Origin: Perna viridis | Taxonomy: Eukaryota | NCBI GenBank assembly: GCA_037379345.1 | Contig: CM074520.1 | Location: forward strand, 40,892,664 to 40,956,663 | Length of the DNA: 64,000 nt | Reading direction: 5' to 3' | Shown: positions 32,518 to 63,648 of the stretch, one piece after another | Position numbering within the stretch: position 1 is the first letter of the stretch | Layout of the letters: each line of letters opens with the position of its first letter | Translations under genes and position numbers: made by a program | The notes under the pieces: generated by a model | The model's database searches: none | Seen by the model: only the letters and a program-made list of their open reading frames with translations | Told to the model about the DNA's origin: nothing

Positions 32518-32601
32518 CTAATCATCAACAAATGACCAACTACTGGCCACAGAGGGGGAGGGGCTATCTTCACCCATGGCTTCTCTTCTGTTGAATACAG
32601 C
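32518..32601 (-). CDS. Terminal coding exon of the kinase gene (AVFNRREAMGEDSPSPSVASSWSFVDD*), not in ORF track
   Basis: ctttttcag|GCT GTA TTC AAC AGA AGA...GAT GAT TAG; phase 0, matching the 35467 donor. Confidence 0.8.
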   Translation of the reverse strand, partial: AVFNRREAMGEDSPSPSVASSWSFVDD

Positions 32602-35600
32602 CTGAAAAAGGAACGTGTGAATTAAAACTTATACTAGTAACAAGGCTAAGAAACTGATTCTTAAGTTAAGTTAAACTGTCAACTTCTAATCTTCTAAAGG
32701 TTTCAATTCTAACACCTTAATATCAATTTGGTTTTTTATTTATTTTTTTTAACATTTAAAAAAAATATTCTTGTTTCTACTGTATGACTATCATTTACAG
32801 CTCATTTATCCTGTAATTTTGTTGTTTCAAATCATGCTAGAATATTCTAGAAAGAGCAATTCTTTCTTTCATCAGAATTAAGTGGACATTTTTTATTCAA
32901 TGCCAGGTTGTACAGTGTACTGGGGTAGGAAAAAAGTTCCTTATTTAAGGATGTTCACTGCTCTATTACGGAAAAACAAGGATTTCAAAAGGCTGTGCAA
33001 TCTTTTAAGATCATGCTAGAAAAATACAAGTAATAAAGAGCTGCACTTAAAGCACATGATACGTCCATTGCCCTTTTGACTTGTCCTTATGCTTTTAATG
33101 AATTTATATGATTTACTAAAAATACTGTGAGCCCTGTCAAATACTCTCCCCCCCTAAAAAAAAAGTAAATAAAAAATGCACAAAAAATTTGGCAATATCA
33201 AGGCTTTTTAGTTTGTTGTCTAGATTTTCACCCTTACATTTCTATCTTGTTATATCTTTATATTTATTAGTCAATCATTTTACAAAATTATCCATTTTCA
33301 ACGATTTTTCAACAAATAAAATTTCCAAGGCTGTTTCCGCCTTTTTTTTTAAAGAGTAAAACTTCAATACACAGAAACGAAAAATCAGAAATTTATAAAA
33401 ATTGAAAGGGAGCTTAAGTCAACAGATATGAACAACACACCAAAGTCTTATAAAAGTTGGTGAAAGTGTTTTTGAGTTATTGTCCGAAGTTTGGACGATG
33501 GACGGATGGACATACCATAAGTATACCATAATACATCCCGTCTTAGACAGGCATATAAAAACAAATGATGGGTCAGTGTGGTTCTTTTGGAGAAATAAGC
33601 ATTTGAAATTTTGGCAGGAAAAGGATTTCTCCTGATTTTCCACAAGTTCCATCTTTTATCTATTAAAAACCCAGACAAAATAACAAGGATTTCATACAAA
33701 AAAACTTCACAAACGAGATTTTAAAGTTTGTTAAATTTGATGAAATTGTGAAAAGAAGAGTGCTATGCAATGCATAAAACCAGTGGAGTCCGAAAGTCTT
33801 ACAAAAATGGCTTAACAAGAGCAGTAAAGATCCTTTTATACAATGCAAGGTACTTTAACATATTCTAAATATCTGTATGGTACAAACACATATCTAAAAT
33901 GTCAGTATGTGTTCTTTAAATATATGTACATTTACAGGATGTCAGGTGAAAATTGTGTATTGGATGTATTACAGTGATGCGTTACTATCATTTATAAACT
34001 TGAATATTGTTGGTGAGATTAAAGAAAGACAAACTAGCTTTACAAGTAGATAACTGATTAAATTGAATTATGTCCCCTTGCTTGCATTAAAAAAAAATTA
34101 GCACTCACACTCTTCTTTTTGAAATCTCAGGCACAGTTCAAAAGAAATGTGTGCTAGGTGTAGGCCCCCATAAAAATGGGTACCATAACTTTATGATACA
34201 GAAAGACTAGTCCTTCCAGGAGCAGATCCAAAGACAAGCATGCTGGGAATATGCTCCCTCCCTACCTCACCACCTAATAATAGGAACATTTTTGTTTGTT
34301 TACATGAATTCTACTCCGAAAATGTTTTTGCCTTACTTCTCCCTACCTTTACTTCTATTTTTAGAGGTCCGGGTGTTACAAGAATAGGCCTGCAGCAGCG
34401 CTAAGCTTCTCATAAAAGGCAACTAAATAGTGCTCAGAACCTTAGCCGGGGGCTATGGCACTCTGCCCAGAGCAACTGGGATGTGTGCCCCAGGTGGTGG
34501 AATGGGGTATCCCTGGTGTGTTTACATGCCATGTTCCTCGCATGTTAAAAAACCATACTGTGGTATTCTCCTGGAGTAGGAACCATAGGGCTCCGCCACA
34601 GGAGGCTAAATTGCCCGACCCTACCCACCTCCCCCTATTTCCAGTGGCAATCAAAATTTGTCGACCCTGTTGTCCTTGTGTCCCATCCCATTTTTCATTT
34701 CATCATCATTTCATGTTCATTTATTATCCACTTCATGTTCATCGCCTGAATATAGCTGAAATATTGCTGCTCGGGCGTTTAACACCAACAAACAAACAAA
34801 CGAACTATTTTTAGACACCCCCCCCCCCACCATCCCATATTAATTCCTGGATCTGCCCCTGAATCTATTTGAGAAGTTAAACTTCAAGTTTTAACACAAG
34901 ATAAAACAAAACAGACAGGAATATATAGATAGGTTCAACAGAATTTCAAAGGGAGATAATACAATTTAAGCATAATGAAAATGACGTAAGGGGTATCCTT
35001 TGGGAAATATAAATGTTACAAGGACATATTTGTCATACTTATATTATTAAGTGCCCACTCAAAGTATTAAACACAATTCTAATACTGATTTTTCACGAAA
35101 ACAAAATACCTTCCTGAAAAACATGTATCTGTTTAACTACAAGCAAAAGCATTAGACTTTGTCAAGACCATCTGGTGATTAGAATTTTGAGTCAAGCACA
35201 CTTTTATCTTACCCTTCTGAAGTCTGTCCATGCAGCCTTTTAATGGAAATACATGTAGGTAACAAACTTATGATTAGGTGTGTGAAAAGTAATGAAAAAT
35301 AAAAACTAAAAAACTAGAAAAAAAAACTGCATTATTTTAATTCGAAGAAGAATTATGTGAAATGAAAAAAAAAATGAATTAATTTGTATAAGAACTAGCA
35401 AAACTTTGCATGCCACAAAAATAAAATTTGAAAACTTTAAGCTTAAGTTACAACAACTAAACCTACCCTTTTAAGAATTTCAGCAATGGAAGAATAAGCC
35501 TGCTTGTTGATTTGTGAAAGATCTTGAAGCTGGTTCGGATGAGGCTTTGATATAGACTGCAGCACTTCTTTCTGGTCCCTAAGATCTGCAGATTTCAAAA

Positions 35601-38600
35601 CTAACTGTCCATCACCCTCTGATTGTGTGCTTAGATTTGAGATTTGTGCCTCCTTACTTGAAACTTTGGCCTCTGGAATGTCCATTTTTACTTTTTTGGA
35701 GTTAGATTTGTCCCCTTTACAGACATTCTTACTTTTTGTCTCTCCTGAAACAACTTGTCCCTTTTTCTCATTATGAGTTGTCTCCCCTTCAGAGACTTCA
35801 ATATCCTTTTTAATTGTCTCCCCTGTTGAACTTTCATGGATTAAGGAAGGTTTAGTAATATCACTCACCACAGGAAGAGGAGGGGCAGGTGGGATATAAG
35901 GTTCATCTGGTATTACAATGGGAGGAGGACGTTGAGGCAAACTAGAGGTTGATACTTTACGTTGCTTTTCTCTTGAACTATCAACCACCGGCCTTTCTTC
36001 CACCCATGCCTCTATACTTTTACCTGGTAGTTTAGTTCTTGGAGAATCCCTTATTTCCTTTGAATTTGTCTTTGGTTCAGCACTCTTGTCAACCAATGGA
36101 ACATCTTTTACTGTTTTAGACTTGTCTCTTTTCTTAGGCTTCCCACCATTACTTAATTCTTCCTTATCAGGTTTCTTGGATTTCATCCCTTGTTCATTAT
36201 TTTTATCTTCTTTAGATTTTGGTTTCTTTGCTTTGTGTTTGTTTAATGAAAAATTTGCAATCTCCATATTAAGAGACAATCTCAAATTAGGCAAGTCTTT
36301 TGCAATTTTACCCGTATTTTGAGTCTCTGGCAAAGGCACAGCACTAGCATTTTGATTTTCATTTGAATTTGCTTGAGATTTATCTCCCTTTTTAGAACTC
36401 TCCTTGTTACTCTTGGCACTTCTACTTGATACAATATCTGGATCAATGTCATCCGTTATACTGTCATTTAAATCTAGACTATCTACAGAGTAGGAATCAA
36501 GATCATATCCCATGTCCAAAATTTTATCAAAATCATCTTTAAAATCCAAAACTTCAACTGAGTCCTTCTCAAATTTCACACAGGATTTGTTATCTCTTTT
36601 ACCTTCTTGAACTTTAACCTCTGGCTTAGTGACCTCTTCCTTTGTTTTCTCAACCTTTCCAGTCCTAAGTTTTGAATGCAGTGACTTAATCTCTTGAACA
36701 TTTCCAGTTTTTTCACTTCTTAATTTTGTATGTAAAGTTTTGATTTCATTGAGTACATTTCCAGACAGACTAGTCCTCATTTTCCTATCATTTGGTTGAA
36801 GTTTATCTTCAGATTTATCTACAGCTTTTGATGCTGAATCAACCACAGCAACATTTGGCACTTTTGGTTTAGAAGTAGTACTTTTAGAATCTTTTACATT
36901 TAAAATAATTTTCTGATCATTTTTGAAAGCTGATTTAGAATTATCCCTGTCCCCATCCACAATGACCTTTTCCTTGTTCTCAGTGTTTGTTGATTGTTTT
37001 AAATCAGTCTTCTGCTTTACATCAGTTTTACTCTTCTCAGAATTTCTACCACTGTTGGAAAGTGTATCAGATAATTTGCTATTAAAAGTTTTATCCTTCT
37101 TACTTGCTTTCTCAGATAATATTTTGCTTGAATCAAAGGATTTTGAAAGAATTTCAGGCTTTTCCTTTCTTCTCTCATTCTCCACTATCTTGTTGTCATG
37201 TGACTTTCTGACCTCTGAACTTTTCGGTCTACTTTGATCAGCTGACTGACTAGTACAAATATCTCTTCTAGAATAAGCTTTTGAGTTAAGCATTTCTTTT
37301 AACAGTAAATCTTGAGACTTTCTCATGTCAAAAGATTTGTTTTCATCAGCACTTGATTTTAGTTTTGTTGCGATCTTTTCCTCTTCTTGTTTTTCCTGAT
37401 ATGATGATGTTGGCGGAGGTATTTCTGCTGGTTTAGATTGATCTGGTTTCAAACCCTGTGGTATATTTTCATTCTTTGTCTTAACCTTTTTTATTTCTTC
37501 CTGAAGCAAATTAGGTAAAGCTGGAGTAGAATTTCGAACAGATTTTGGTGTGGTAACTTCAAATGTATCAGTTTTAGTCTGCAGATCTTTCTTTAGTTTT
37601 TCCTGTAGTTCTATTTTGGTCGTTTTAATTTCTTTTTCCAATGCCTCTTGATTTGTTTCTTTTGACAAATCAGTTCTAGTCCGCAAATCTTTCTTAAGTT
37701 TTCTCTCTAATTCTGCTTTGGTTTTAATTTCCTTTTCCAATGTCTCCTTCTTCATTTCTTTTGAAGAATCAGTATTAGTCTGCAGATCTTTCTTTAATTG
37801 TTTCTCTAGTTCTGCTTTGGTTTCTTTAATTTCTTTTTCCAGCGCTTCCTGTTTCATTTCACGTTCTTTTTTGTCTGACATCTCTGTTTTTGTTAGAGAT
37901 GTTCTGATAGACGATGATGAATTAAAGTCAGAGGTGGAAGGAGGAATACTAGAATATGTCTCGATAACAGCTCCTACATCTTCAGGCTTGTTTAACTCTG
38001 AAGAAATTAATTCATGAAGCTGAGATTGCTTCCTTGTACTTGGACTCCTTATTGTAGGAGAAAGTATGTCACAAGATGCCTTTAGATAATTCAAATATTC
38101 TGTAGTAGTGTCTTCAACTTGAGCATGTTTATCTTCTGTTCTAGATGTTTCTGATATGTTCTTCTCCGAGGATGCCAAATCCACTGAAGACCTCACATTT
38201 GAATTTGATGAATTTTCGTTTCTCATCTCAAAATTCTGATCATGTGACCATTTAAGACTAGATTTGTAGTCTCTTTGTGGATTCCTTGTCTGAACAAACA
38301 CACTTGATGTTTCAGAAACAGGCATTTCAGAAAAGTGCTTCAATTGGCTAGAATCATGTGACCTTCTCGTAAAGTCATGTGACTTCTTGGTTAGATCATG
38401 TGATTCCATGATAGCATCATCTGAGTGTTTGATATCTTCCATCATAGACTTAACATTTTCGAGATCTAGAGTGTTATTGACTAGGCTAATGATTGTCCTT
38501 GCTGATTGGACATCCTCTAATGCCTCACTGGGAACTCCAGCTTCTTTAAAAAGAGCTCTCCAATCTGGAGGGAAAGCAAGTTTGTCCAACTGTGATATAA

Positions 38601-41600
38601 TATCCTGAAATCAAAGGTAGTACATGTACTGTAAAAAAACAGTGTTTTAGAAATTTTGATACTTTAGGTTTCCATTGTAAATCAACCCATGAAAATTAAC
38701 TTTTCTATAATCAGGACACTTTCCATATATTTTTTTTTTTTTTTTAAATGTTGCCATTTGTCATACAGACTTTCCTTACGACTACTGCCTAGATTTTTTC
38801 AGTTCAGTCATTTTGTTATTTCCTTTCATTCATATCTACTTGCTAAAAATAAATTGACACTTTGAAAAGGGGGCGCCTGGCAAGGTTCCTAGGAAAAGGA
38901 GGGTGCTAGGACATTATTTGCCAGTTTCTGTCAATTCTAGATATGACAATGACAAATTATCCAATTAAAAAAAGGGGGGTGCCAAAACCCTACACCATCC
39001 TCTGGATCTGCCACTGTGATGACTTTCTCTCACTAAAATTTCATTTGCTCCAGGGGACAGATATGGAAATCCTAAATCACAGAAATATTCTCTCTGACTG
39101 AGGCTATCAACTACAGACAGAAGACCTATAATGAGTTCCTGATTTACTGCATATTACTCTGCTAGCTTATATTTATAGACTGCCAAACAGGATGTAAAAA
39201 AATCACAAGACATAGCACTACTCATTACAAATCGGTGAAGTTGTTTCCACTGCACTTACTAATTTGCATATGGAGTTGTGGGTTAGTACTAAGTATGTTA
39301 GAGGCATAAAGATGTAAAATAGCAAATATACCGTCTGTACAAGTAGTACATTGAGTAGGGGCTGACTGAAATACTGGCCATTAATAGTTAGAGATTCTCT
39401 CTCCTTAAGTAATAAGTAGTATAAATTTTTCTCCAATTGAGATTTTCAACATGCGAACTTTAGTCTGTAAATCCGTGATTTTCATATAGGTACAAAGGAT
39501 AGATTCACAATCCGTGCCCAAATTCATAGACAGTAAACTCCTCTGATATTACCACCTAGAAAAGTCCATTTTATTTTTACTTTTGAGAAAATGTTTTGTC
39601 CAAGAGTTTTAATACAGAGAACAAAATTTATTAGTTAAGATAGCATGTCACAAGTTTACAGTATTGTTACCTTAAATGGTGGTCTCCTGGCAGGGTTCTG
39701 GTGCCAACATCTCTGTATCAAATCTGAAAGGTCCGGTGGACAGCTGGATGGTATCTCTGGTCTCTTGTTTAAACGTACTCTCTCTAGAATCTAAACATAC
39801 ATATTTTCAAACTCAGATTTATGGAAGTAAGTTTCGTGTCACAAAAAAATCATTTGTGATTTTTTTTTTAATTTCTTTTAGTGTTTCATACAGATTGTGG
39901 CTATTAAAAACAAAATGTTGCATGATATAGTGTGCTAAGAATACCCAAACTCAACCACATTTAAGTTGTACATTAAACAGGAAGTAGAAGATTGAGGAAC
40001 CTGGACAGAAAAGGCACTGTACATGTTATCACGCAAAAGTAATATACCAAATATCTAAGCATTTCTCCAATAGAAGCTGAGAAATCTGTTACAGAAAAGT
40101 GTAACAGACAGACGGACAGATAAGGTGAATGCAATAAGTAAATAAAATAAGTGCTGAAAATAAATTGCACTGATTTTATGTTTAAAGACTCAACCGTCAT
40201 TGTAAGTAAAGAAGGAAAACTGTGCAACTCTAGTAATTTTGGGAAACTAAGCATAATTTGAAAGCAGTTTTGCTGAGGGCAAATATCCATATCAATATGG
40301 TACAAAAAAATGTAGTAAATACTTGGTTACAAATCCTTTAAATGACTTTAATCAAATATCTTTCTGCATATCAATTATGCAAGACATCTTACTTGAAACA
40401 CAGAACAGCCATCATAAGGATGACATCTTGTAAGCATCTCCCATAAAATAATTCCAAAACTGTAGACGTCTGCTTTGGCTGTTATCTCCCCTGTCTCAAG
40501 TAGTTCTGGTGCCATCCACTTGGGGGAGCCACCAGTGCCTTTCTTTCTTGAAGCTTTTGAAGCCCTCATGTCAGCATCATGCCTATAGTGTAATAAGAAA
40601 ACATGTTGACATGACAGAAATAATGGCTTCAATAAATGTGAACTTACCAGAAGATTTACTTCGTGCATATGGTTGTTTCATGGACGGAAGAACACAAGAA
40701 TTGAAAATCTACACACATATTTAATTTGATGGCAAGATTACATAATACAAATTTGTCAAAATAATATTTCAAATTGTTAGGATACATATCATTATCAAAA
40801 GTATAACAGGGTAGAACTACCTTAATGAAAAATGAGTTATCTCCCTTCCATCAATATGAAAAGCAAGATTTCCATATGGTTAATTTAATACTCATTGGCA
40901 GATGTTTTGTTTCCAGAATAAGAGCATAAACAAACAGCTGATTTATAATGAATTGACACTAATTGGTTTTTATCTAATGTGCAGCATAACTGACAGAGAA
41001 GATGTAAGAGATGTGTATTTCTTTTAGGTGGATCTAAAACATGTTTTAGAATCCCAATTCTGTGAATCCTAATCATGTTATAAACATTAAAAAACTGTAA
41101 TGTTCCAATGAAATAATTTTAAATATGGCTGACCATGAAAAGAAGTCTTGGGTTATGATTTCAATTTGAATCAATGGATTCTTATGATTCACATGATTCG
41201 AAATCATGTTTCAAATACATGTAGCAGAAACACCCCTCAGATCACAGTATCTTTTGAGCACTGATATAGTACATGTATGATGCTTGCAAATGAATTCCAT
41301 AGAATCAATGTTTACAGTTTTTCTGAAGTAGCAGTATAAAATTACCTGAACTTTGAAAAGCCAAAGTCAGCCACTTTAGCTCTGCCACTACTGTCTAGTA
41401 AGACATTCATAGACTTGAGGTCAAGGTGTAGGACTTGTGGTTTGTGTTGATGGAGGTAGTTCATCCCAAGAGCAATGTCATGTGATACTCCATAATACTC
41501 AGCATGGTCCATCGATGCACTAGAAATAAAAGAAAACATGGGTCAACAGCAGCTTAACTTGTATTAAAAATGTTTAATAATGACAAATAAAATATTTCAA

Positions 41601-44600
41601 CGATAGAAAATTTGTGTCATCAAATTATTTTAAATATGTATAATTCCAGCAGGACAAATCAGTTTATGATAAAGCATTTCATTCTATAATCATTGACTTC
41701 ATATGGAAATACAATGCTGAATACAGCTGTGCTGTAATTGTATATATGTATATGTTTTCCTGTTACTTAAGCCACTGATTATATCCTGAGATTCATATGA
41801 CAGAATTCCCTGTGTCTTTAGTTTAAAATCCTTGATAAAACATGAAATAAACTCAGCAGGACACAATAAGGATGAACTGTTATCAAATAACTTTATTGTT
41901 TTTCCATTGCAGGTGAAAGCCAATATAATGGTATACATACAGCTCTGATTCTTCTTCTTATTTTGGCAAAAGGGGCCATTTTTGGAAATTATCTACATAT
42001 GTGAATGCCTACTATGTACAGGATGTGGAAAATGCTCTACAAAGCCTCACATTTACCCTGACTCTAAGCCTCATAAAGGCTATATATTTTTTGTACAATA
42101 CCCTACTTTTTAATACATACATTACATTGTATTTTAGTATCCATGTTTTTGTTTGCTAACAACTTTATTTTTGAAAAAAATCAAAATATGCTTAGATTAT
42201 AAAACATGATGTTTATTTAAGGAGGTAGACCTAGGGTAAGGGACATAACTCTTGAAATCAGTGATATGTTTGTACCATATTCAAAATCACCGAAGATTCT
42301 CAAGCTTTCCTTTGAAACAAAATGAAATCAGTCTGAGTTACTTCGATGCTTTCATGAGATTGATGTAAATTGGTGAGTTTAAACATTCCAATGATTAGTA
42401 AGTGTTATATCCCTTACCCTAGGTCTACCTCCTTAAAACCAAACCACAAACTGTCTTCCAGTGACCTAAACATGGCAATAAGTTTATGACATACCATTTC
42501 GGATCATGTAGATAATAATAAAGACTTCCTCTAGCCATGAACTCTAGAACCATGACAGGATACTTGTCACTGGTACAGACACCTAGTAGCTGTACAACTC
42601 TTGGATGGTGTAGCTCCTTCAACAGACTGACCTACAAAATAGTTTGATAATTGTTATAAAAACTCTTTGGACTATCACAAAAAATAATAGGATAATTAAT
42701 AGGAAAGAGCAAATAACCAAAATATGATCAAAAGTACCGAAGAATGCTTATTTTTAATATGTGGTGTGCAGAACTTGTTCTGTGCACGAGCTAAATCTTT
42801 ATGCATTTTTGGCAGGAGTGATAATATTTTGATATTCACAATATCCAGTTATAATCCTATTTATAGAATAGATATTTTCCATTATTCGAAAGAATTTTCA
42901 ACATGAATTTTAAATTTTGTAAACTGCACATTGATATTCATGTTGTGACGTTCTGTGATGTTTTGGGGGGAGAAAGTCTGAGAGTGAAATTACAGAATTT
43001 ATTTAACAGTGTGAAATATCAATTTTTTTTACAAAAGTAACATTCAATAAATCACTGCCATCTATATAATAAATACAGAAATATCAATCACAAAAATGTT
43101 GTAAATTTCAGTATGCTGTACACTTGTTTCAAGGAGTAATCTCTCATTAGCAGCATTAGAACCAAAAACATGCACAGTGTTATTTAGCAAATAGTTCATG
43201 ATGCTGAGAGTCATATTTCAATATATGGACATGTTGGTCATCCCATAAATTACATGGACTGAAGCGTAACATTTATTTTATTTAATCCTATCATTAAAAT
43301 CAGGCCTTTAAATTACGAGTTCTAGCGAGTTTAAGTTCGACTGTACAAGGTGTACATACAGAAATTTTATTCATTGACATCAATTTTGCATCAGATTTTT
43401 AACGCTTACATTAACCCTAGCCCTGAAGGTAAAATGACAAGTGAACAGACGCACAGACTGTCTGCAAATATGATCCATCAAAAGATTCAAAATAAGTACA
43501 AACCTCGGCTGCAAAGTAGTTCTTGTCATGTGATGTTAGTGGTATTTTTAGCTGTTTGATGGCTACTTCCTTCCCGATACAAACACCATGATATACCTTA
43601 CAGAAAGTTCCCTCTCCGATCAGATCTAAAAATTATCATCAATATTAGCATTTTAATTAAGGAGGAAGACCAAGGGTAAGGGACACAAATCTTACAAATC
43701 ATTGGAATGTTTGTATTCACTATTTTACATCAATTTCATGAAACCATCAAAGTAACTGCGACTGATTTCATTCTGCTTCAAAGGAAAGCTTGAAAGGCTT
43801 GGGTGAAATTGAATATGATACAAACATATTACTGATTTCAAGAGTTATGTCCCTTACCCTAGGTCAACCTCTTTGAAATAAGGCTTTCTAGAGCAGTTCT
43901 CTTAATAAACAGTGCTTACTGGCATTTCAATACTTACTATGTATTTTTTTTTAAAGCAAAGAATAGTATCCTTTGTTCAATATGGTAAAAAAAAAATTCA
44001 GGTCACAGTATTCAATGATCAGAATAATCAGATTTTATCCTCTCAAGAAAAAATCAAATCTTGCACTGTGATAGTTTAGGTCTTGACTTCAAAATTGCCA
44101 TTGTTCCATGTATCTCAAACACTTTTCAATATGATTTAAAACGAAGTCTCCTCATCAAGCAAACCTTACAAGAAAATGTGAACTTGAACCTTCCAAGCTG
44201 AATAATTAGATCCTGCCCTCTTTTTAAGGTGGTAGACCTAGGGTAAGGGACACAACTCTTACAAATCATTCAAGCGTTTGTATTCACCATTTTACATCAA
44301 TCTCATGTAAGCATCAAAGTAACTTGGACTGATTTCATTCTGTTTCAAAGGAAAGCTTAAGAGGCTTTGGTGAAATTGAACATGATACAAACATATCACT
44401 GATTTCAACAGTTATGTCCCTTAACCTAAGTCTACCTCCTTAAGTATATAATAACATGCCACATCTGTATAATCACACATAATGTCATCACTATCAATCA
44501 GTATATCATACGATACAATACCTGTATAATCACACATGATGTCATCACTATCGATCAGTTAAAATACGATATAATACTTGTATAATCATACATGGTGTCA

Positions 44601-50600: not shown

Positions 50601-53600
50601 ACTGAATTTTTGCTTGACATGTCTATCAGTCAGATGGTATTTCATAATGGCTGATAGGACACAGATGGCCCAACCACCCTAAAAATTAAGAGTATAAATT
50701 GTAAAATAGGATATGCACCACAGAGTGCAACTATAAAAAGAACAATATCAACTACGGTAATTTGTATAATATACATGTACAATTGTGGAATCAATGTCCA
50801 CATGGCCTATGTTTTCATGCAACGTCACATCCACTGTATAATGAAAGTAGAGCAAGGCTCAATTCAAAGATAGTTTGTTAAAATGCTAAGGAAAAATCAA
50901 GCCGAGTAGACTCTTTACTTTTAATTTTATTCAAAAAAATTTGTCAGTAAAAAAGGGATTGTGAAAATACTCAAAATACATTGAATGTAAGTTTTTAAAA
51001 AAGTTATCAATTGAAACATTTTTTTTATTCACGCCTCCTTACAACTTATTGAAGCATGCTCAGAATTACCAGATATTTGTTAAGTTGACAAAACAAGATT
51101 ATGGTTTAGTAAACAATAAAAATCAAACTATCATCACTGTTACATAATTTATGGAACTAAACATACAAAAGCATCAAATCTCATCTAAAATTTTGAATTT
51201 TAGATATAAAATCATTCAACTGTAACACCATTAAGTTAATCATGGTTTTAACTGTGCAGACACCTGTTCCAGCTCTGTATTGAAGGCATTTCAACCATCT
51301 TTGTAAGTTTTAGAATATCAACGGATACAGAAGAAACCAATGAAATGTCATAATCGTGTATCCATGGATATGAATGTCCAAAACAGCCTGATCTTGAACT
51401 TGATACATGTACTTATTCTTAGAATTTCAATCAGCATAATTCAAGTACATGTATTTACATTAGATTGTCCCTAAAAACCTAATAAAATTTGAAAAAAAGG
51501 TTGAGGGATCTTAATCATGTGCACAATTTTTTGCATAGTCTACTCTTCTTACAGTTCATCATTACCTTTCGACAAATATGGCTTCAATTTCAACACTAAT
51601 TTTCCTCTGACTACAGACAAACCTGTGTATCTAGAAGAATTTTCAGTCATAGCATTCACTAGATATGAGAAAGCTGCATTTATTTTATACAAAATCATAT
51701 CAAAAACAGGCTGACTTTTGTGTTTTAATTTGATCAATTCTGCAGAGAAGCCCAAAAATGAACTAAGTCTGGATAATGTTTTGGGATGTTCCCGATGTAT
51801 TAAAGGTAAACTCTATTCACATTGACATGCTGGTCAATAGAAGGACAATAGCCAACTGTCCTATACACAATAGGTGATTTTAACTATGTAAATGAGAGGC
51901 CTATATCAAGTGAATCTCTGTTTATTTTTGCACTCTCTGCAGAATTGCAAAAAATTAACCCTGAAAAAGGTCATTTTTTTATATAATTTGACATAAACTT
52001 GATGTAACTTCTTCATATCTAAGGGATGCTATGCCTTAAAAATTTTCTAGATACACAGGTTCGTCTGTAGTCAGAGGGAAATTAGTGATGAACTTGAGAC
52101 CATACTTGTCGAAAAGCAATGATGAACCCTAAGAGAATAAAAAAAGAACCTGAAGTCTTAATTCATGTCTAGCAGCCATCTCATCTCTCTGTGCTTTCTT
52201 TAATTTCTGTGCCTTGATAAATTTGTCTTCCTTTTCAGTCAGCTGTTTCTGTTTTTCATTGAATTTCTTTGCTGCTGCCGCTACGGCTGTAACAACAAAT
52301 CATTATATTAAGTGCTAGAATCTGTAAGAACTAGGCAAAATTGAAAAAATAATGAATCATGCTCTGAAAAACACACACACACAAATTTGATAATATTGGC
52401 ACATATTTTATGGTCTGTTGAAGGTGAATTGACAAATCATTCATTTTAAAAGTGTCAGAGAATGCAGAAAAGAGAATTCAAAGTTACAGTAGAATGATCA
52501 TGATGATAGGGAAAATTAGAGTTATCTCCCATTGACGATGCAACTGCAATACATTTCATATATAATTTATACCTTAAACTACTGACACTGCAAACAGAAA
52601 TGAAAGCCATTTCTGCACTTCAGATACATTTTGTATATGTAGCATTTTAAATAAGATTTCATGGAAAGACTTGTGTTTTTTCCACCACGATTCACCCACT
52701 GCCTGATTCTTACAGAAAATAGCACTAGAAACTATTCTAAAATTAGTTTTATACATGCCTAATGCATTACATCAGTAACATTACAATAGCGATTTTTGTA
52801 TTTTTTCTTTTCCCTGTGTAAAAGATTAAGATAGGAATTGTGTCTAAAAACTTATAAACTACCAATCAATGCACTGTTTAAAGATTACAAAGATTAAATG
52901 GCTTATCATAAAAATGCTCCTTAGAAAGTAAATATCACACTTCATGGTTATAAATTCATTTTTAAGAAGTAATTCAAGTTCTGAAAGGCTACATGCCTAT
53001 AACTTTCCATTGAATCATCAAAAGAGAAATTTCAGAAAAGAGATAAAAAATGTCCTTCTGATTTTCTTCTCGTGAGAAACATGAGAAATGATAAAATCAT
53101 TCTTACTGAAAAGATACCATATAAAATTCTAAAGGTATCACTATCTCTCACTTGTTTTTTTTTTAAATCACTACATGCACAGTACAGACAGAGACAAACA
53201 GTACCATGTCTGATCACTGACATGGTGGTGTACCACTTTTAGAGTGGCAATAAATATTTTTTTTAGTCTTTGAACACATTTTTATATTTTTTCTGCATCT
53301 AAAGTGGTAGAGCTTACCACTCACAATACAAAAGAAAGTAAAAAAAAATCTCTTATAGAAAAAGATATTGAGAACCACTCTAAAAGTGGTACACCACTAT
53401 GTTGGTGTTCAGTCACAGCATGTCTCTTTCTGTACTGTACGTCACAAAAAGTGAGTGAGTTGCAACATATCAATAATTGAGCAGCAAGTGAAATATCTAA
53501 TTTTAATAAGATTGTAAGTACATTTCTTGTCACTTTCATTACAAATGACCACAAGGATTGCATAAAAAAAATCAGGGTAAAAAAAAACTTGATTCTTGTA

Positions 53601-56600
53601 AACCCACCCAAAAAAATGAAATGGTTGACCCCATACCTTCCTTGGCCTTTTTGTCAGCCTGTTGAGCAGATTTAGCTCTGGGCCACAATACTGGTCCTTT
53701 CTTTGCCTTTACACTGGCACTGTTTTGTCTGTCTAAAGACTTTTTCTTCACTGTCTTGTCACTTCCATCTTTCTCATGGTCAACTTTCCTTTTCTGAGTT
53801 CCGTCCTGAGTTTTCTCAGGTTGCTTTGTTCTCCTTTTTGTTGGACTGCTAGCTGGTCTCGCCGGTGAACTTGATCTTGTTCTTAAGCTTTTTATTTTCT
53901 TTTCTACCCTGTCAGACAGGTTTTCTTTTTCACATTTTTTATTCTCTATGGATGCTTGTTTGCTTGCTAAAGTTGTACATGTAACATTAGAGCTTACATT
54001 TGTAGAATCATAAGTCACTTTCATCTTGTCATTTTCAGAAGTTTTTGAAAAATCATTCTTCCTGCTATCATCAGATCTAGTAAGGCTAATCCCACTATCA
54101 GCAGATTTTATTGGCTCCTCCTTCTTACCACTCATAGACCAGTCATCTAGAGACGAACGTACATTACTTGAAGAGTACAGTGCTTTCGATGCTGAACTTG
54201 CAAAACTCCTTGATCGTCTTAAACTAGTCCTATACTGATTAATATCATTCAAACGCTCCTCAAAAGTCAAACTTTTATTTAAAGATTCCATAGTCTTTGA
54301 CTGTCGGCCATCGAGAGAAGTATTCAAAATTTTATTGGAATCACGACTAGATGAATTGGCATCGCTTGATTTTTGACTTTCAGGATGACTATCCTTCCTG
54401 AGGTTTTTTATGCCACGAAGAATCTTATTAAGAGCACCAAATGCTGTAATTCCCATTTCATTCAACTGTAAAGCAGTCAGCTGTGAAATTTCTGCCATGT
54501 CTATTTCATTGTCAGCGAATAAATTCAAGTACTTCTCTTCTTCCAACAATCCAAGGCTTTTAATCCAATTTCTCACAAGTGGATCACATTTTGCCATTTT
54601 TGGAGAAGATTTTTGTTCTTCTTGTGAGTGACTACTATCATGCAGGAAGTTCTTTGATGTTTGACTAGTCTGTGAATTACTTGGCAGAGACAAAATTTTA
54701 AACACTTCATTGTCCCGACTTCGTTCTAATGCTTGAGACGGTTTTATGTTTGTCTGTTTTGACTTACTAGTAGGTGGTTTATTTCCAAGTCTTTCTTCTT
54801 TTTTGTAATTATCTTCATCATTGAAGTTCTTCCTGGTACTTTCTGAAAACTTTACATGTTGTAAAGTTTCATCATCTTCAGACAAATGATTTTTCGGGAA
54901 AGAATCTTGACGAGGTACATGTAGCGGGCTATTCTTGGTAAACTCTTTCACCTCAGTAGCCATTATAATTGGTCTATTACCATTGGTTGTTGGCTGCTTT
55001 GGATTTCTAGGAATAACACCAGCACTTGCTCTTTTTAGCACTTTATTTTTCAAAGCTGTCACCCTGTCTACTTCATCAAACTTAGAATCTACTTTTAAGT
55101 CATTTTTCTTACTTGTATCTTTGTACTGATCTTTTTTCTCCTTAACTTTATTGGTTCCCTGATTCACCCCCTTAATTTTAGCTTCTGAATTCAATGCACT
55201 ATTTACGACTTTATTATTAGATGAACCTTTGAGAGGTTTTGAAACTAAGTCATTTTGATTTGAAGCTGCAGCACTAGGCATAGAAGAAGTTGTATTTAAC
55301 TGACTCTGATGCTCATCCTGTCGATTTCTCCGTCTTCTCGTCTTTGACAATGATGACTTATCTGGATCTTCCAGGTCTTTTGAATTTTTGTACGACTTCA
55401 GTTTTCCTTGTCCTCCATGTTGCCATCTCGAACCTCCAATTTCCTTTCTATAGATGAAACAAAAACAAAGTTCGAAAAAAGACACAGAGAATCAACATGT
55501 GTAAACTTAATGGAACAATATAATCAGGGATTTAATTCTCATACCATCTTAAGGTAGGTTCAGTTACATTTTTTAAAACTTTTATATTTACAATAACTGT
55601 ATACACGTATGTACTGAAAACAATTTAGAAAGATCCGTTAGCACCCATGAAACTGCAAAATGTGTGTTTGTGTTGCCATTTGACTTTATAGTTTAATTCT
55701 ACAAAAGTGTCACCATTCTGTTACTGGTGATTTTATTACTTTCGTTATTGGGGTCCTTAAGAGCTTACTTAAAGGTGTGTTTATACTTGGTGATCTCTGA
55801 AAGTATTTACTATTTTGTATTTAGGTTATGCATTGGTGCATTTGTAGCATTTTACCATATATGTTTTTTTCTATGGTACAGTATCAAAACTGTATTCTGA
55901 TTGAGTTATGTACTTTCAGTTCAGATTAAAATTTTTATCTAAACTGTACAAGTATCAAAAAATAGAAGAAAAAAGAAAAAATCCAAAAAATTATATGATA
56001 GAGATTATGTTTGAGGAAAGCACATTTGCAGCAGATTCAATATAATTCAAGGCCAAGAAAAAAAAATTATGCGTTTAAGATTATCCTAGCTTCCCTTTTT
56101 GTTTCTGTCTACCCTCGCACATTTTATTCTCTCGAAGGAGAGAAGTTAAGTTAGTGGGAGTGTCATTTACAAATCATTAAGGTTTAACACCTTTGAAACT
56201 TCTCACGAAACACACCAGAAATGGCAATAGAAGATTAGTGTTGCACTGTCAAAACAAGATTTTACTTATTCAGTGACAGATTATTACCTTAAAATTCCTC
56301 GTACACTTGAGTCATCTTCTTGTCTGTATCTTTGGTGAAGTAATAATGCATCTTCAAGGGCCTCGACTTCTGCGTGAAGCTTCTTACTCTCTTGTTTTAA
56401 GTGATTCAAGCTGGGTAAAGTAAAATAGACAAAAAATTCTTAATTCAATTCTTAAGGCTGAACATATATATACATGGAATTTATCCAACAGAGTGGTGCC
56501 TATTAGAAATCGTAATTTTGGGTTTTGAGAAATATATTTTAATTCAGGGATAACAAACTAGTTATTTTTGCATGTAAGATACATATTTGTCAATTAATGT

Positions 56601-63451: not shown

Positions 63452-63648
63452 GTTAAGAGAAATAACAATTGAAACCAGTAATATGTTTGTATCATATTCA
63501 ATTTCACCAAAGACTATCAAGCTTTCATTTGAAACAGAATGAAATCAATCCAAGTTACTTTAATGCTTACATGAAATTGATGTAAAATAATGAATACAAC
63601 CGTTCCAATGTACGAGTTGTGTTCCTTACCCAAGGTCTATCTCCTTAA
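63452..63648 (-). mobile_element. Same TTAA MITE, copy 9 (one end degraded)
   Basis: Internal sequence and right TIR plus ttaa match. Confidence 0.75.

Follow-up and report, generated by a model that had tools for sequence, protein, structure and literature searches.

Directly behind the kinase domain, a gene of Perna viridis encodes a segment that is most likely a divergent relative of the helical, post-CRIB half of the WASP/PAK GBD. This half of the PBD/GBD was named the WASP autoinhibitory domain (WAID) by Kollmar et al. The segment is read from the minus strand at 38467-38604 of the window, that is, of the whole stretch of 64,000 nucleotides that was analysed (contig CM074520.1, assembly GCA_037379345.1), and its translation is DIISQLDKLAFPPDWRALFKEAGVPSEALEDVQSARTIISLVNNTL. 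The best explanation, to which we would give about an even chance, is that the segment is a divergent, CRIB-less WAID homologue located behind the last helix of a SAM-TKL kinase, where it would lock a C-like helix and be released by something other than Cdc42 or Rac. A conserved CRIB-less GBD half in this position hints at a kinase-linked actin switch that has not been described, and no paper describing a kinase fusion of this kind was found in the literature.

Gene structure

The gene lies on the minus strand and is present in a single copy in the genome. The kinase fused to the segment is TKL-type and MAP3K-like, and it comes with a SAM domain (54397..54576) within a large upstream exon/ORF of the same gene (53572-55485), residues 304-363 of which match Pfam SAM_1 at E=7.6e-13. 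The catalytic loop, which reads HLD and not HRD, and the DFG motif are encoded by an exon taken from its ORF (41345..41539); only the 3' (low-coordinate) end of this exon is mapped, by a splice joint (41345/40581) in one contig of run X3. The following exon (40393..40581), defined by contig joints and translation, carries the activation segment, APE and helix F, and its joint to the next exon (40393/39790) is present in contigs of runs X1, X3 and X7. The last kinase exon proper (39671..39790; joints and translation) encodes subdomain XI and terminates in CWHQNPARRPPFK, followed by a GT donor.

The exon after the last kinase exon starts at 38604, directly downstream of the acceptor TTTCAG, and begins DIISQLDKL-AFPPDWRALFKEAGVPSEALEDVQSARTIISLV; the two exons are joined in frame in spliced RNA-like contigs. 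The 1066 nt between them (38605-39670, GT..AG) are precisely absent from contigs in three of the four runs (X1, X3 and X7, from three studies), while run X4 yielded no contig skipping this interval. Because the contigs skip exactly this stretch, transcripts carry the kinase in frame with the segment, much as the sequence-only reading of this DNA had proposed when it placed a GBD-like helical segment immediately after the kinase. The big exon opens with nine codons (38578..38604, DIISQLDKL by translation) that encode the end of the last kinase helix. The intron thus falls within that helix, and the big exon holds both the kinase end and the segment.

The conserved core of the segment, FPPDWRALFKEAGVPSEALEDVQSARTIISLVNNTLD, comprises 37 residues (38464..38574) and corresponds to WAID-like, post-CRIB GBD-like helices 1-3, as delimited by an alignment of 32 sequences and by the WASP, N-WASP and PAK chains. 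A fourth predicted helix, LENVKSMMEDIKHSDDAI (38410..38463), is less conserved and is drawn from the HMMER alignment and structure prediction. Farther downstream, the translation contains a proline-rich stretch, PPPIVIPDEPYIPPAPPLP (35872..35928), whose poly-Pro is kept in the orthologues. Alignments then define a V-like region (35509..35604) with conserved L..QK..L and PHPxQLxDL motifs, degenerate as a WH2. The first half of a C-like amphipathic helix (SSIAEILKR; 35467..35493) runs up to a GT donor, and the helix is uninterrupted in orthologue proteins. Its second half and a Trp tail are assigned, by translation, to a terminal exon, AVFNRREAMGEDSPSPSVASSWSFVDD plus stop (32518..32601); the splice to this exon rests on agreement with the Mytilus californianus RefSeq model and not on reads.

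Similarity to the WASP and PAK GBD

When the single segment was compared by HMMER with 177,635 distinct PDB sequences, it gave gapless alignments to two WASP chains, 2k42_A (E=0.026) and 1ej5_A (E=0.048). The alignment spans 45 residues with 14 identities; the sequence-only reading had given a gapless alignment with about 10 of 32 identities, and 10 are indeed counted in those columns. It reaches query residue 55, so that the first part of the fourth helix pairs with WASP LEAVRQEM. The sole better PDB score (E=0.0017) belonged to a construct of tau repeats, none of whose stretches passes singly, and it was treated as a repeat-summing artefact. With a family profile, seven of the eight PDB matches at E<=10 were WASP, N-WASP or PAK (1ej5, 0.009; 1cee, 0.17; 2k42, 0.012; 4mit, 0.31; N-WASP, 0.53-0.74). 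The best of these E-values, 0.009, is short of the usual thresholds, and no other GBD similarity result reached them. For comparison, the WASP exon of this genome reaches 1e-10 to 1e-12 against these chains and the segment 0.009-0.05, so that the segment diverges far more than a true orthologue would.

Other methods pointed to the same domain. Positions 24-52 of the 59 in Pfam PBD (PF00786) match the Branchiostoma member (P0037) at E=0.0094 and 16.7 bits; the gathering cut-off is 21.3 bits, and every PBD score in the family falls short of it. No other Pfam family recurs among the segments as often as PBD, which matches three of 32 at E<=10 (best, 0.016). PBD gave no match at this level to the P. 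viridis segment itself, which was also not recovered by a genome-wide PBD scan. By hhalign, the segment was aligned in the same register both to this genome's own WASP exon (P=0.0021) and to a 12-row profile of that exon (P=0.0012), with low hhalign probabilities (13% and 19%). The best three named clusters in the ESM Atlas were all PBD, with scores of 0.80-0.82, where anything below 0.9 is a lead only. Foldseek ranked WASP 2k42_A first, but at E=1.4, and the VIA-align structural match was likewise weak (Z=2.4, rmsd 4.2 A over 44 residues). Helices are predicted at exon residues 13-21, 26-30 and 32-45 (pLDDT 80-91), with the fourth at residues 48-65 (pLDDT 78 dropping to 57), matching the helix-turn-helix-helix-helix pattern of the WASP GBD. 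Because the GBD signal is repeated across five partly independent methods, it exceeds chance, though it is unproven.

The resemblance to the helical part of the WASP/N-WASP GBD (1EJ5, 1T84, 2K42, 2LNH) is gapless over 35-45 residues in one register and includes the hydrophobic core. The columns of WASP L267, L270, F271, I276, L281, I290, Y291, F293 and I294 (residue numbers counted from the Tyr291 anchor) are hydrophobic in 32 of 32 family sequences. Substitutions L270P, F271S, I290T and I294T are described as opening human WASP. Four of five WASP gain-of-function sites (L270, F271, I290 and I294) are thus among the columns that are hydrophobic throughout; the fifth, S272, is not conserved. 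Ile in place of the regulatory Tyr291, pointed out earlier for this gene, recurs in the family: 29 of the 32 sequences have I and the other 3 have V.

Conservation and relation to the kinase

A search of 1.84 billion representatives returned 49 matches at E<=0.001, of which 43 are family members and six were discarded as repeat-protein artefacts. Named members come from Mytilus, Haliotis, Patella, Potamilus, Solemya, Ptychodera, Saccoglossus, Branchiostoma, Patiria, Antedon and Chromosphaera. Across Holozoa, the family ranges over molluscs, echinoderms, hemichordates, amphioxus and one ichthyosporean; no vertebrate, arthropod or nematode is among the named members found. The family occurs in tractable embryos (sea star, amphioxus, acorn worm and mussel). 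A lack of conservation in orthologues would have spoken against the original proposal, and instead conservation is very strong: the 37-residue core is free of gaps across 32 sequences, with P2, W5, L8 and G13 invariant. The region past the helices is variable between members. In all 13 longer proteins the core starts exactly 15 residues past the kinase RPxF, with no insertion or deletion, and the Pfam kinase matches in orthologues stop 5-6 residues ahead of the segment.

This spacing, fixed from the ichthyosporean to amphioxus, suits a kinase-coupled role at least equally well as a role in the tail. The segment might then be a C-terminal extension of the kinase that packs on the C-lobe, either as a PAK-type switch or as a stabiliser, and regulates the kinase and not the tail, with descent from a PBD possible. 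We regard this as rather unlikely. It would fit the single exon that carries the kinase end and the segment with an intron inside the last kinase helix, and also the Antedon model, in which the segment (pLDDT 79-86) carries on from the kinase C-lobe (83-93). At E=0.31, the first 20 residues of the segment, which start FPPEWR, find a match in the PBD of an Entamoeba PAK, and PAK-type kinase fragments are found among the top ESM clusters. PAK also resembles the family in having a PBD-type element (PF00786; 4MIT chain E) and a kinase in one polypeptide. However, just those 20 residues align, and WASP chains outscore PAK and do so over a longer stretch. The order is also reversed, since the PBD of PAK lies ahead of its kinase. 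The targets of the PAK switch are kinases of the STE20 group; the solved kinases nearest to the one considered here are CTR1, ZAK, ABL and DLK. Finally, the segment has no CRIB, and no PAK-like kinase-inhibitory segment was recognised in the variable region past the helices.

The C-terminal tail

The preferred reading, a WAID-like lock on the tail, calls for a C-like helix to be bound, and a C-like helix plus Trp tail terminate 10 of 10 full-length members. According to the main text of Kollmar et al. (2012, PMC3298513), the C domain has three large hydrophobic residues spaced three residues apart, a basic doublet and a closing hydrophobic. The C-like helix in the window (I-xxx-L-xxx-V-xx-RR-xx-M) fits, as a pattern match only, and the pattern is kept in all 10 full-length members. 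The last 80 residues of the Solemya member fall on WH2/WHAMM clusters in ESM (0.85, a lead only). The canonical WH2 pattern LLxxI...LKK is present in the Chromosphaera member only and is degenerate in the metazoan members; Pfam WH2 gave no match at E<=1 in five full-length members. The V/C part of the window has no PDB match, a four-sequence C-terminal profile did not match WASP or WAVE in the PDB, and no signal linked the tail to the WASP locus of this genome (the WASP C-exon piece ranked 9th of 442, E=8.2). Ser is abundant in the tail and acidic residues are few, with Trp present in 10 of 10 members. The likeness of the tail to VCA is limited to pattern and a weak language-model lead.

The absence of any statistical link between the tail and VCA also speaks for the idea that the GBD resemblance arose by convergence or chance. 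On this view the segment would be a conserved helical module, specific to the family and with some other partner, such as another protein or its own N-terminal helix/SAM region. All of the similarity scores are short of the usual significance, the structural similarity is weak, and the matches to WASP, N-WASP and PAK are not independent because these proteins are mutually related. We nevertheless judge this idea quite improbable. The HMMER profile, Pfam, hhalign, the language model and Foldseek all point to the same domain and register, and the nine WASP hydrophobic positions are kept in every sequence. The comparison profile from the C-terminus found a single unrelated PDB match at E<=10, against seven GBD matches for the segment. 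In addition, the elements downstream of the segment (proline-rich stretch, C-like helix, Trp tail) match the usual company of a WAID in WASP-family proteins.

Loss of the CRIB and the possible mode of release

The claim that no CRIB precedes the segment has stood up well. Strict, loose and looser regexes found none in any of the family's 13 longer proteins, nor in the window read in all six frames; the loose regex did detect the motif at eight control loci of the same genome. Consistent with this, the sole Pfam PBD match begins at profile position 24, the CRIB occupying positions ~1-23. Binding of a Rho-family or other small GTPase without a canonical CRIB is very improbable: residues past the CRIB in WASP and PAK do contribute to the GTPase interface, but the main binding determinant is missing in 13 of 13 proteins and the gap from kinase to segment is just about six residues. 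The family also differs from WASP in having neither a basic region nor a WH1 domain.

The earlier interpretation survives in so far as it took the segment for a divergent GBD helical half from which the CRIB is gone. The idea of a CRIB-less GBD half is not new, because WAIDs of this kind are described in the main text of Kollmar et al. (2012, PMC3298513) for ascomycete WASPs and Entamoeba WAML, with the corollary that release must use something besides a Rho GTPase. By the architecture described there, WAML has an N-terminal IMD, which sets it apart from the SAM and TKL kinase of this family. The same main text contains no kinase fusion ("kinase" occurs twice, one passage concerning IRSp53), and neither "SAM domain" nor "Branchiostoma" occurs in it.

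If the segment is a WAID homologue, its helices would line a small hydrophobic groove, and the amphipathic C-like helix conserved at the C-terminus of the same molecule would bind there. This binding would keep closed a VCA-like tail that runs from the proline-rich stretch through the V-like motif and the C-like helix to the Trp tail. Since the CRIB is missing, we propose that release is not by Cdc42 or Rac. It might instead proceed via the attached kinase, through conformation or autophosphorylation, or alternatively by SAM-driven clustering or by ligands of the proline-rich stretch. Release by Ser/Thr phosphorylation, as raised in the sequence-only reading, is pure conjecture. In a bolder version, which we consider somewhat unlikely, the family would be an ancient and so far undescribed class of WASP-family Arp2/3 activators, ranging from ichthyosporeans to amphioxus, with the segment as its autoinhibitory half. 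The SAM-TKL kinase would here take the place of WH1-basic-CRIB, and the kinase or its upstream activators, in place of Cdc42, would open the lock between WAID and C helix. Phosphorylation by the kinase might in addition put charge on the Ser-rich tail.

To our knowledge, the well-studied WASP-type locks are all opened by Rho GTPases, the WAVE complex or bacterial mimics such as EspFU. A WASP-type lock directly behind a kinase would, if true, let kinase signalling reach actin nucleation without a GTPase and extend the WASP family by one class. Such a protein would also offer a direct way to ask whether phosphorylation or kinase conformation can open a WAID. If the partner of the segment is the kinase rather than the tail, the family would instead contain a PBD-type switch on a TKL kinase, of which we know no example.

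Gene structure and the kinase junction

The segment (a 37-residue core plus flank, window 38467-38604, minus strand) belongs to a multi-exon animal gene on the minus strand, in which a SAM exon, coiled-coil regions and a protein kinase split across several exons lie 5' of it in gene order. The SAM domain (Pfam SAM_1, E=7.6e-13) is in a large upstream exon, also on the minus strand. The last kinase exon (39671-39790, minus strand) ends in ...CWHQNPARRPPFK, and the big exon that carries the segment runs on the same strand from 38604 to a GT donor after 35467, opening with DIISQLDKL-AFPPDWRALFKEAGVPSEALEDVQSARTIISLVNNTLD... and holding 1046 open codons (1053 residues as scanned). A predicted terminal exon (32518-32601, minus strand) contributes AVFNRREAMGEDSPSPSVASSWSFVDD and the stop. 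The kinase is TKL or MAP3K-like, with CTR1, ZAK, ABL and DLK as the nearest solved kinases. Because HLD replaces HRD in the catalytic loop (41342-41539, minus strand; HYD in Chromosphaera), it counts as non-RD; DFG and APE are kept.

The sequence-only reading had the kinase running directly into the segment, and this is confirmed by an in-frame splice junction. Contigs in three of four public sequencing runs (X1, X3 and X7, from three studies) skip 38605-39670 exactly (GT..AG, minus strand), while none does so in run X4. These contigs lack 39791-40392 as well, and 40582-41344 is missing from one contig of X3. The RNA nature of the runs is a guess, and the junction is taken as transcribed because contigs without introns are what RNA gives. 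The full-length protein context comes from database orthologues only. The intron at the junction (38604/39671) is phase 0, lies in the last helix of the kinase nine codons before the segment, and is apparently common to many taxa. In the single-exon ORFs of nine family proteins (P0009, P0011, P0021, P0027, P0029, P0031, P0034, P0044 and P0048), an acceptor-like ...Q is read through just before (D/E)I..L..L.

Several other features of the locus were recorded. A conserved N-terminal helix (...KKLHAEVEALEDALLLHQRY...) at 56284-56409 (minus strand), corresponding to residues 7-41 of the Antedon model (pLDDT 87-88), may serve as one more intramolecular element or in dimerisation. Residues 244-343 of the big exon (37576-37875, minus strand) hold three helical repeats in tandem, each ~34 residues long and built on KEIK.TKAELEK.LKKDLQT.TD, which are predicted as long helices (pLDDT 70-83 in the window-exon model). 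A short ORF, MKSVICLYH.Q...FPLKQNEI..SYF.A.M.LM, occurs in four copies on both strands, in introns and flanks (42252-42368 (+), 43725-43841 (-), 44292-44408 (-) and 63469-63585 (+)), and looks like a dispersed repeat.

Conservation of the segment

When 1.84 billion cluster representatives were searched exhaustively with phmmer, 49 proteins matched the segment at E<=0.001. P0022, P0041, P0043, P0045, P0047 and P0050 were excluded before all counts as WD40, LRR or other repeat proteins matched through 2-7 summed stretches; the segment is present in all 43 remaining proteins and in two from another search. The Mytilus californianus member is 90% identical across 70 residues, and the other named molluscs are Pinctada, Potamilus, Solemya, Haliotis and Patella. 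Beyond molluscs, the named members are the hemichordates Ptychodera and Saccoglossus, Branchiostoma, the echinoderms Patiria and Antedon, and the ichthyosporean Chromosphaera perkinsii. Among the family matches, most of which are unnamed, none is named as a vertebrate, an arthropod or a nematode. The genome carries the segment only once: the window's own scores E=8.4e-25, the next candidate E=2.96.

Across 32 aligned segments, residues 1-37 are gapless and divergence sets in beyond residue 37. P2, W5, L8 and G13 never vary in this alignment, and conservation reaches at least 90% at S24, R26, I29 and V32; the Gly position is Cys or Asn in two members outside this alignment. A conserved motif of the form RP.DVP.L.L.DS(D)n follows the segment by ~5-10 residues in P0027, P0028, P0029, P0031, P0034, P0036, P0038, P0044 and P0048, and is not found in the window's gene.

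The segment starts exactly 15 residues past the RPxF motif of kinase subdomain XI in all 13 longer proteins. The constancy of this distance, together with the exon that the segment shares with the end of the kinase, speaks for close coupling to the C-lobe, and PAK offers a precedent for a PBD-type switch acting on a kinase. That the helices are functionally part of the kinase is the main rival to the clamp reading below, and is judged less likely than it. Since Pfam kinase matches stop five or six residues ahead of the segment, there is no room for a CRIB. With a loose regular expression that was positive at eight control loci, the 13 proteins and all frames of the window gave no CRIB, and the absence asserted from sequence alone is thereby borne out.

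Resemblance to the helical half of the GBD

When 70 residues were compared with 177,635 distinct PDB chain sequences by phmmer, five matches were obtained at E<=10. Two are WASP (2k42_A, E=0.026; 1ej5_A, E=0.048), in a gapless 45-residue alignment with 14 identities. In this alignment the earlier count of 10 identities in 32 columns is correct, and the regulatory Tyr of WASP does align with Ile. The top single-sequence match, a tau repeat construct, was set aside because no individual stretch passes.

The 32-segment profile matched eight PDB sequences at E<=10, seven of them GBD or PBD chains: WASP 1ej5 (E=0.009), 2k42 (0.012) and 1cee (0.17), three N-WASP chains (0.53-0.74) and the Entamoeba PAK PBD 4mit (0.31, first 20 residues only). 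A C-terminal profile built from the same proteins, used as a comparison, matched a single PDB sequence, an unrelated one. Of the checks that had been proposed for the segment, the one on conservation came out clearly in its favor, with strong conservation in orthologues; in the profile search GBD or PBD chains dominate the matches, at scores below the usual thresholds.

Pfam PBD scores 16.7 bits (E=0.0094; cut-off 21.3) in the amphioxus member, where residues 1018-1046 align with profile positions 24-52 of 59, the post-CRIB part, and the match coincides exactly with the segment. None of the four other full-length proteins has a PBD match at E<=1. Scanned singly at E<=10, three of 32 segments match PBD (best 0.016), which is the most recurrent family. 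The window's whole big exon, its first 100 residues and its segment scanned singly have no Pfam PBD match, and a genome-wide PBD scan picked up ten other loci and not this one. A language-model feature search placed three PBD clusters on top at 0.80-0.82, a range counted as a lead only.

In the canonical WASP gene of this genome (G000:C1:15342400-15352399), separate exons encode the CRIB and the WAID (the WASP autoinhibitory domain, or post-CRIB half of the GBD), and the gene further has a poly-proline exon carrying two WH2 motifs, a C exon and an exon for the acidic DEWDD part. The CRIB exon closes with ...GFDV, and an intron lies exactly between CRIB and WAID. The helical-half exon matches WASP and N-WASP chains at 1e-10 to 1e-12, and the segment is therefore far more divergent than a true WASP exon. 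By hhalign the family profile aligns with this exon at P=0.0021 (probability 13%) and with a 12-row profile of such exons at P=0.0012 (probability 19%), in a register common to both runs and to the HMMER alignments. Recent copying of the genome's WASP exon was rejected as the origin of the segment, which resembles that exon (hhalign P=0.0021) no more closely than it does human WASP; the two also differ in where their introns fall.

The segment is probably homologous to the helical half of the GBD. The proposal of WASP/PAK-type GBD helices that lack a CRIB and possibly clamp the C helix or kinase is supported in part, in that the homology is likely and the CRIB is absent (profile, Pfam, hhalign and regex evidence); the clamp itself is taken up below. 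All of the scores are sub-threshold, as a chance or convergent likeness would have it, and we consider that explanation quite improbable.

Columns matching WASP L267, L270, F271, I276, L281, I290, Y291, F293 and I294 are hydrophobic in all 32 sequences. A 2026 preprint reports that L270P, F271S, S272P, I290T and I294T open WASP and make it active without Cdc42; four of these five sites fall in conserved hydrophobic columns of the family.

Predicted structure

AlphaFold2 was run with the family alignment on the Antedon protein (1172 residues) and on the window's big exon. Helices are predicted at Antedon residues 975-983, 988-992, 994-1009 and 1012-1031 (pLDDT 79-86, dropping to 59) and at exon residues 13-21, 26-30, 32-45 and 48-65 (pLDDT 91, dropping to 78). 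Autoinhibited WASP has the order helix-turn-short helix-long helix-helix, and the predicted order in the segment is the same. A Foldseek comparison of the window-exon model with 350,542 chains yielded just two matches at E<=10, of which WASP 2k42_A ranked first (E=1.4, 30% identity, TM by target 0.44). VIA-align of 2k42_A was weak (Z=2.4, rmsd 4.2 A across 44 residues, with only two chains aligned), and in its wide search every match fell to the three long repeat helices (model residues ~249-354), which makes that search uninformative on the segment. Fold-level support for GBD likeness from these models is suggestive only. The last 46 residues of the window-exon model are mostly coil (pLDDT 67-82) and could be packed against something.

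The C-terminal tail as a candidate partner

All ten full-length members close with the same four elements: a poly-proline stretch, a conserved region with L..QK..L and PHPxQLxDL, a helix of amphipathic character (SIAEILK(K/R)AVxxRRxAM) and a tail in which Trp-Ser is invariant. The tail is Ser-rich and not acidic. The helix matches the general C-domain pattern in Kollmar et al. 2012 (PMC3298513). A textbook WH2 pattern is present in the Chromosphaera member, and the last 80 residues of the protein from Solemya retrieve WH2 clusters, WHAMM first at 0.85, in the language-model search (a lead). Pfam finds no WH2 at E<=1 in five full-length members, and sequence tests of the tail against solved VCA regions and the genome's own WASP gave no link. 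Isoform X1 of Mytilus californianus (P0053) has eight residues more than isoform X2 (P0006), exactly at the position of the intron that divides the C-like helix (32602-35466 in the window). The insertion would interrupt that helix; regulated splicing or an annotation artefact could account for it.

A possible kinase-coupled clamp

A clamp function is suggested by analogy with the WASP family. The segment would grip the C-like helix as a WAID-type module, and the kinase would take over the role of the missing CRIB input; we prefer this reading to its rivals, with the arguments for and against it about evenly balanced. Clamping and coupling to the kinase are not mutually exclusive: if the module were wedged in the space separating the C-like helix from the C-lobe, the conformation of the kinase would be linked to release of the tail, which is close to what the sequence-only reading proposed.

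In Kollmar et al. 2012, the GBD is divided into CRIB and WAID, and WAID-only proteins, which require GTPase-independent release, are described in the ascomycete WASPs and in Entamoeba WAML with its IMD domain. GBD helices without a CRIB are therefore an already known kind. The literature searched, including the available part of Kollmar et al., covers the field incompletely and does not prove absence; it contained neither a kinase fused to a WASP-like module nor a holozoan SAM-kinase-segment family. Within that coverage, the placing of a kinase ahead of a CRIB-less GBD-type module, and the holozoan family that carries this arrangement, are apparently new.
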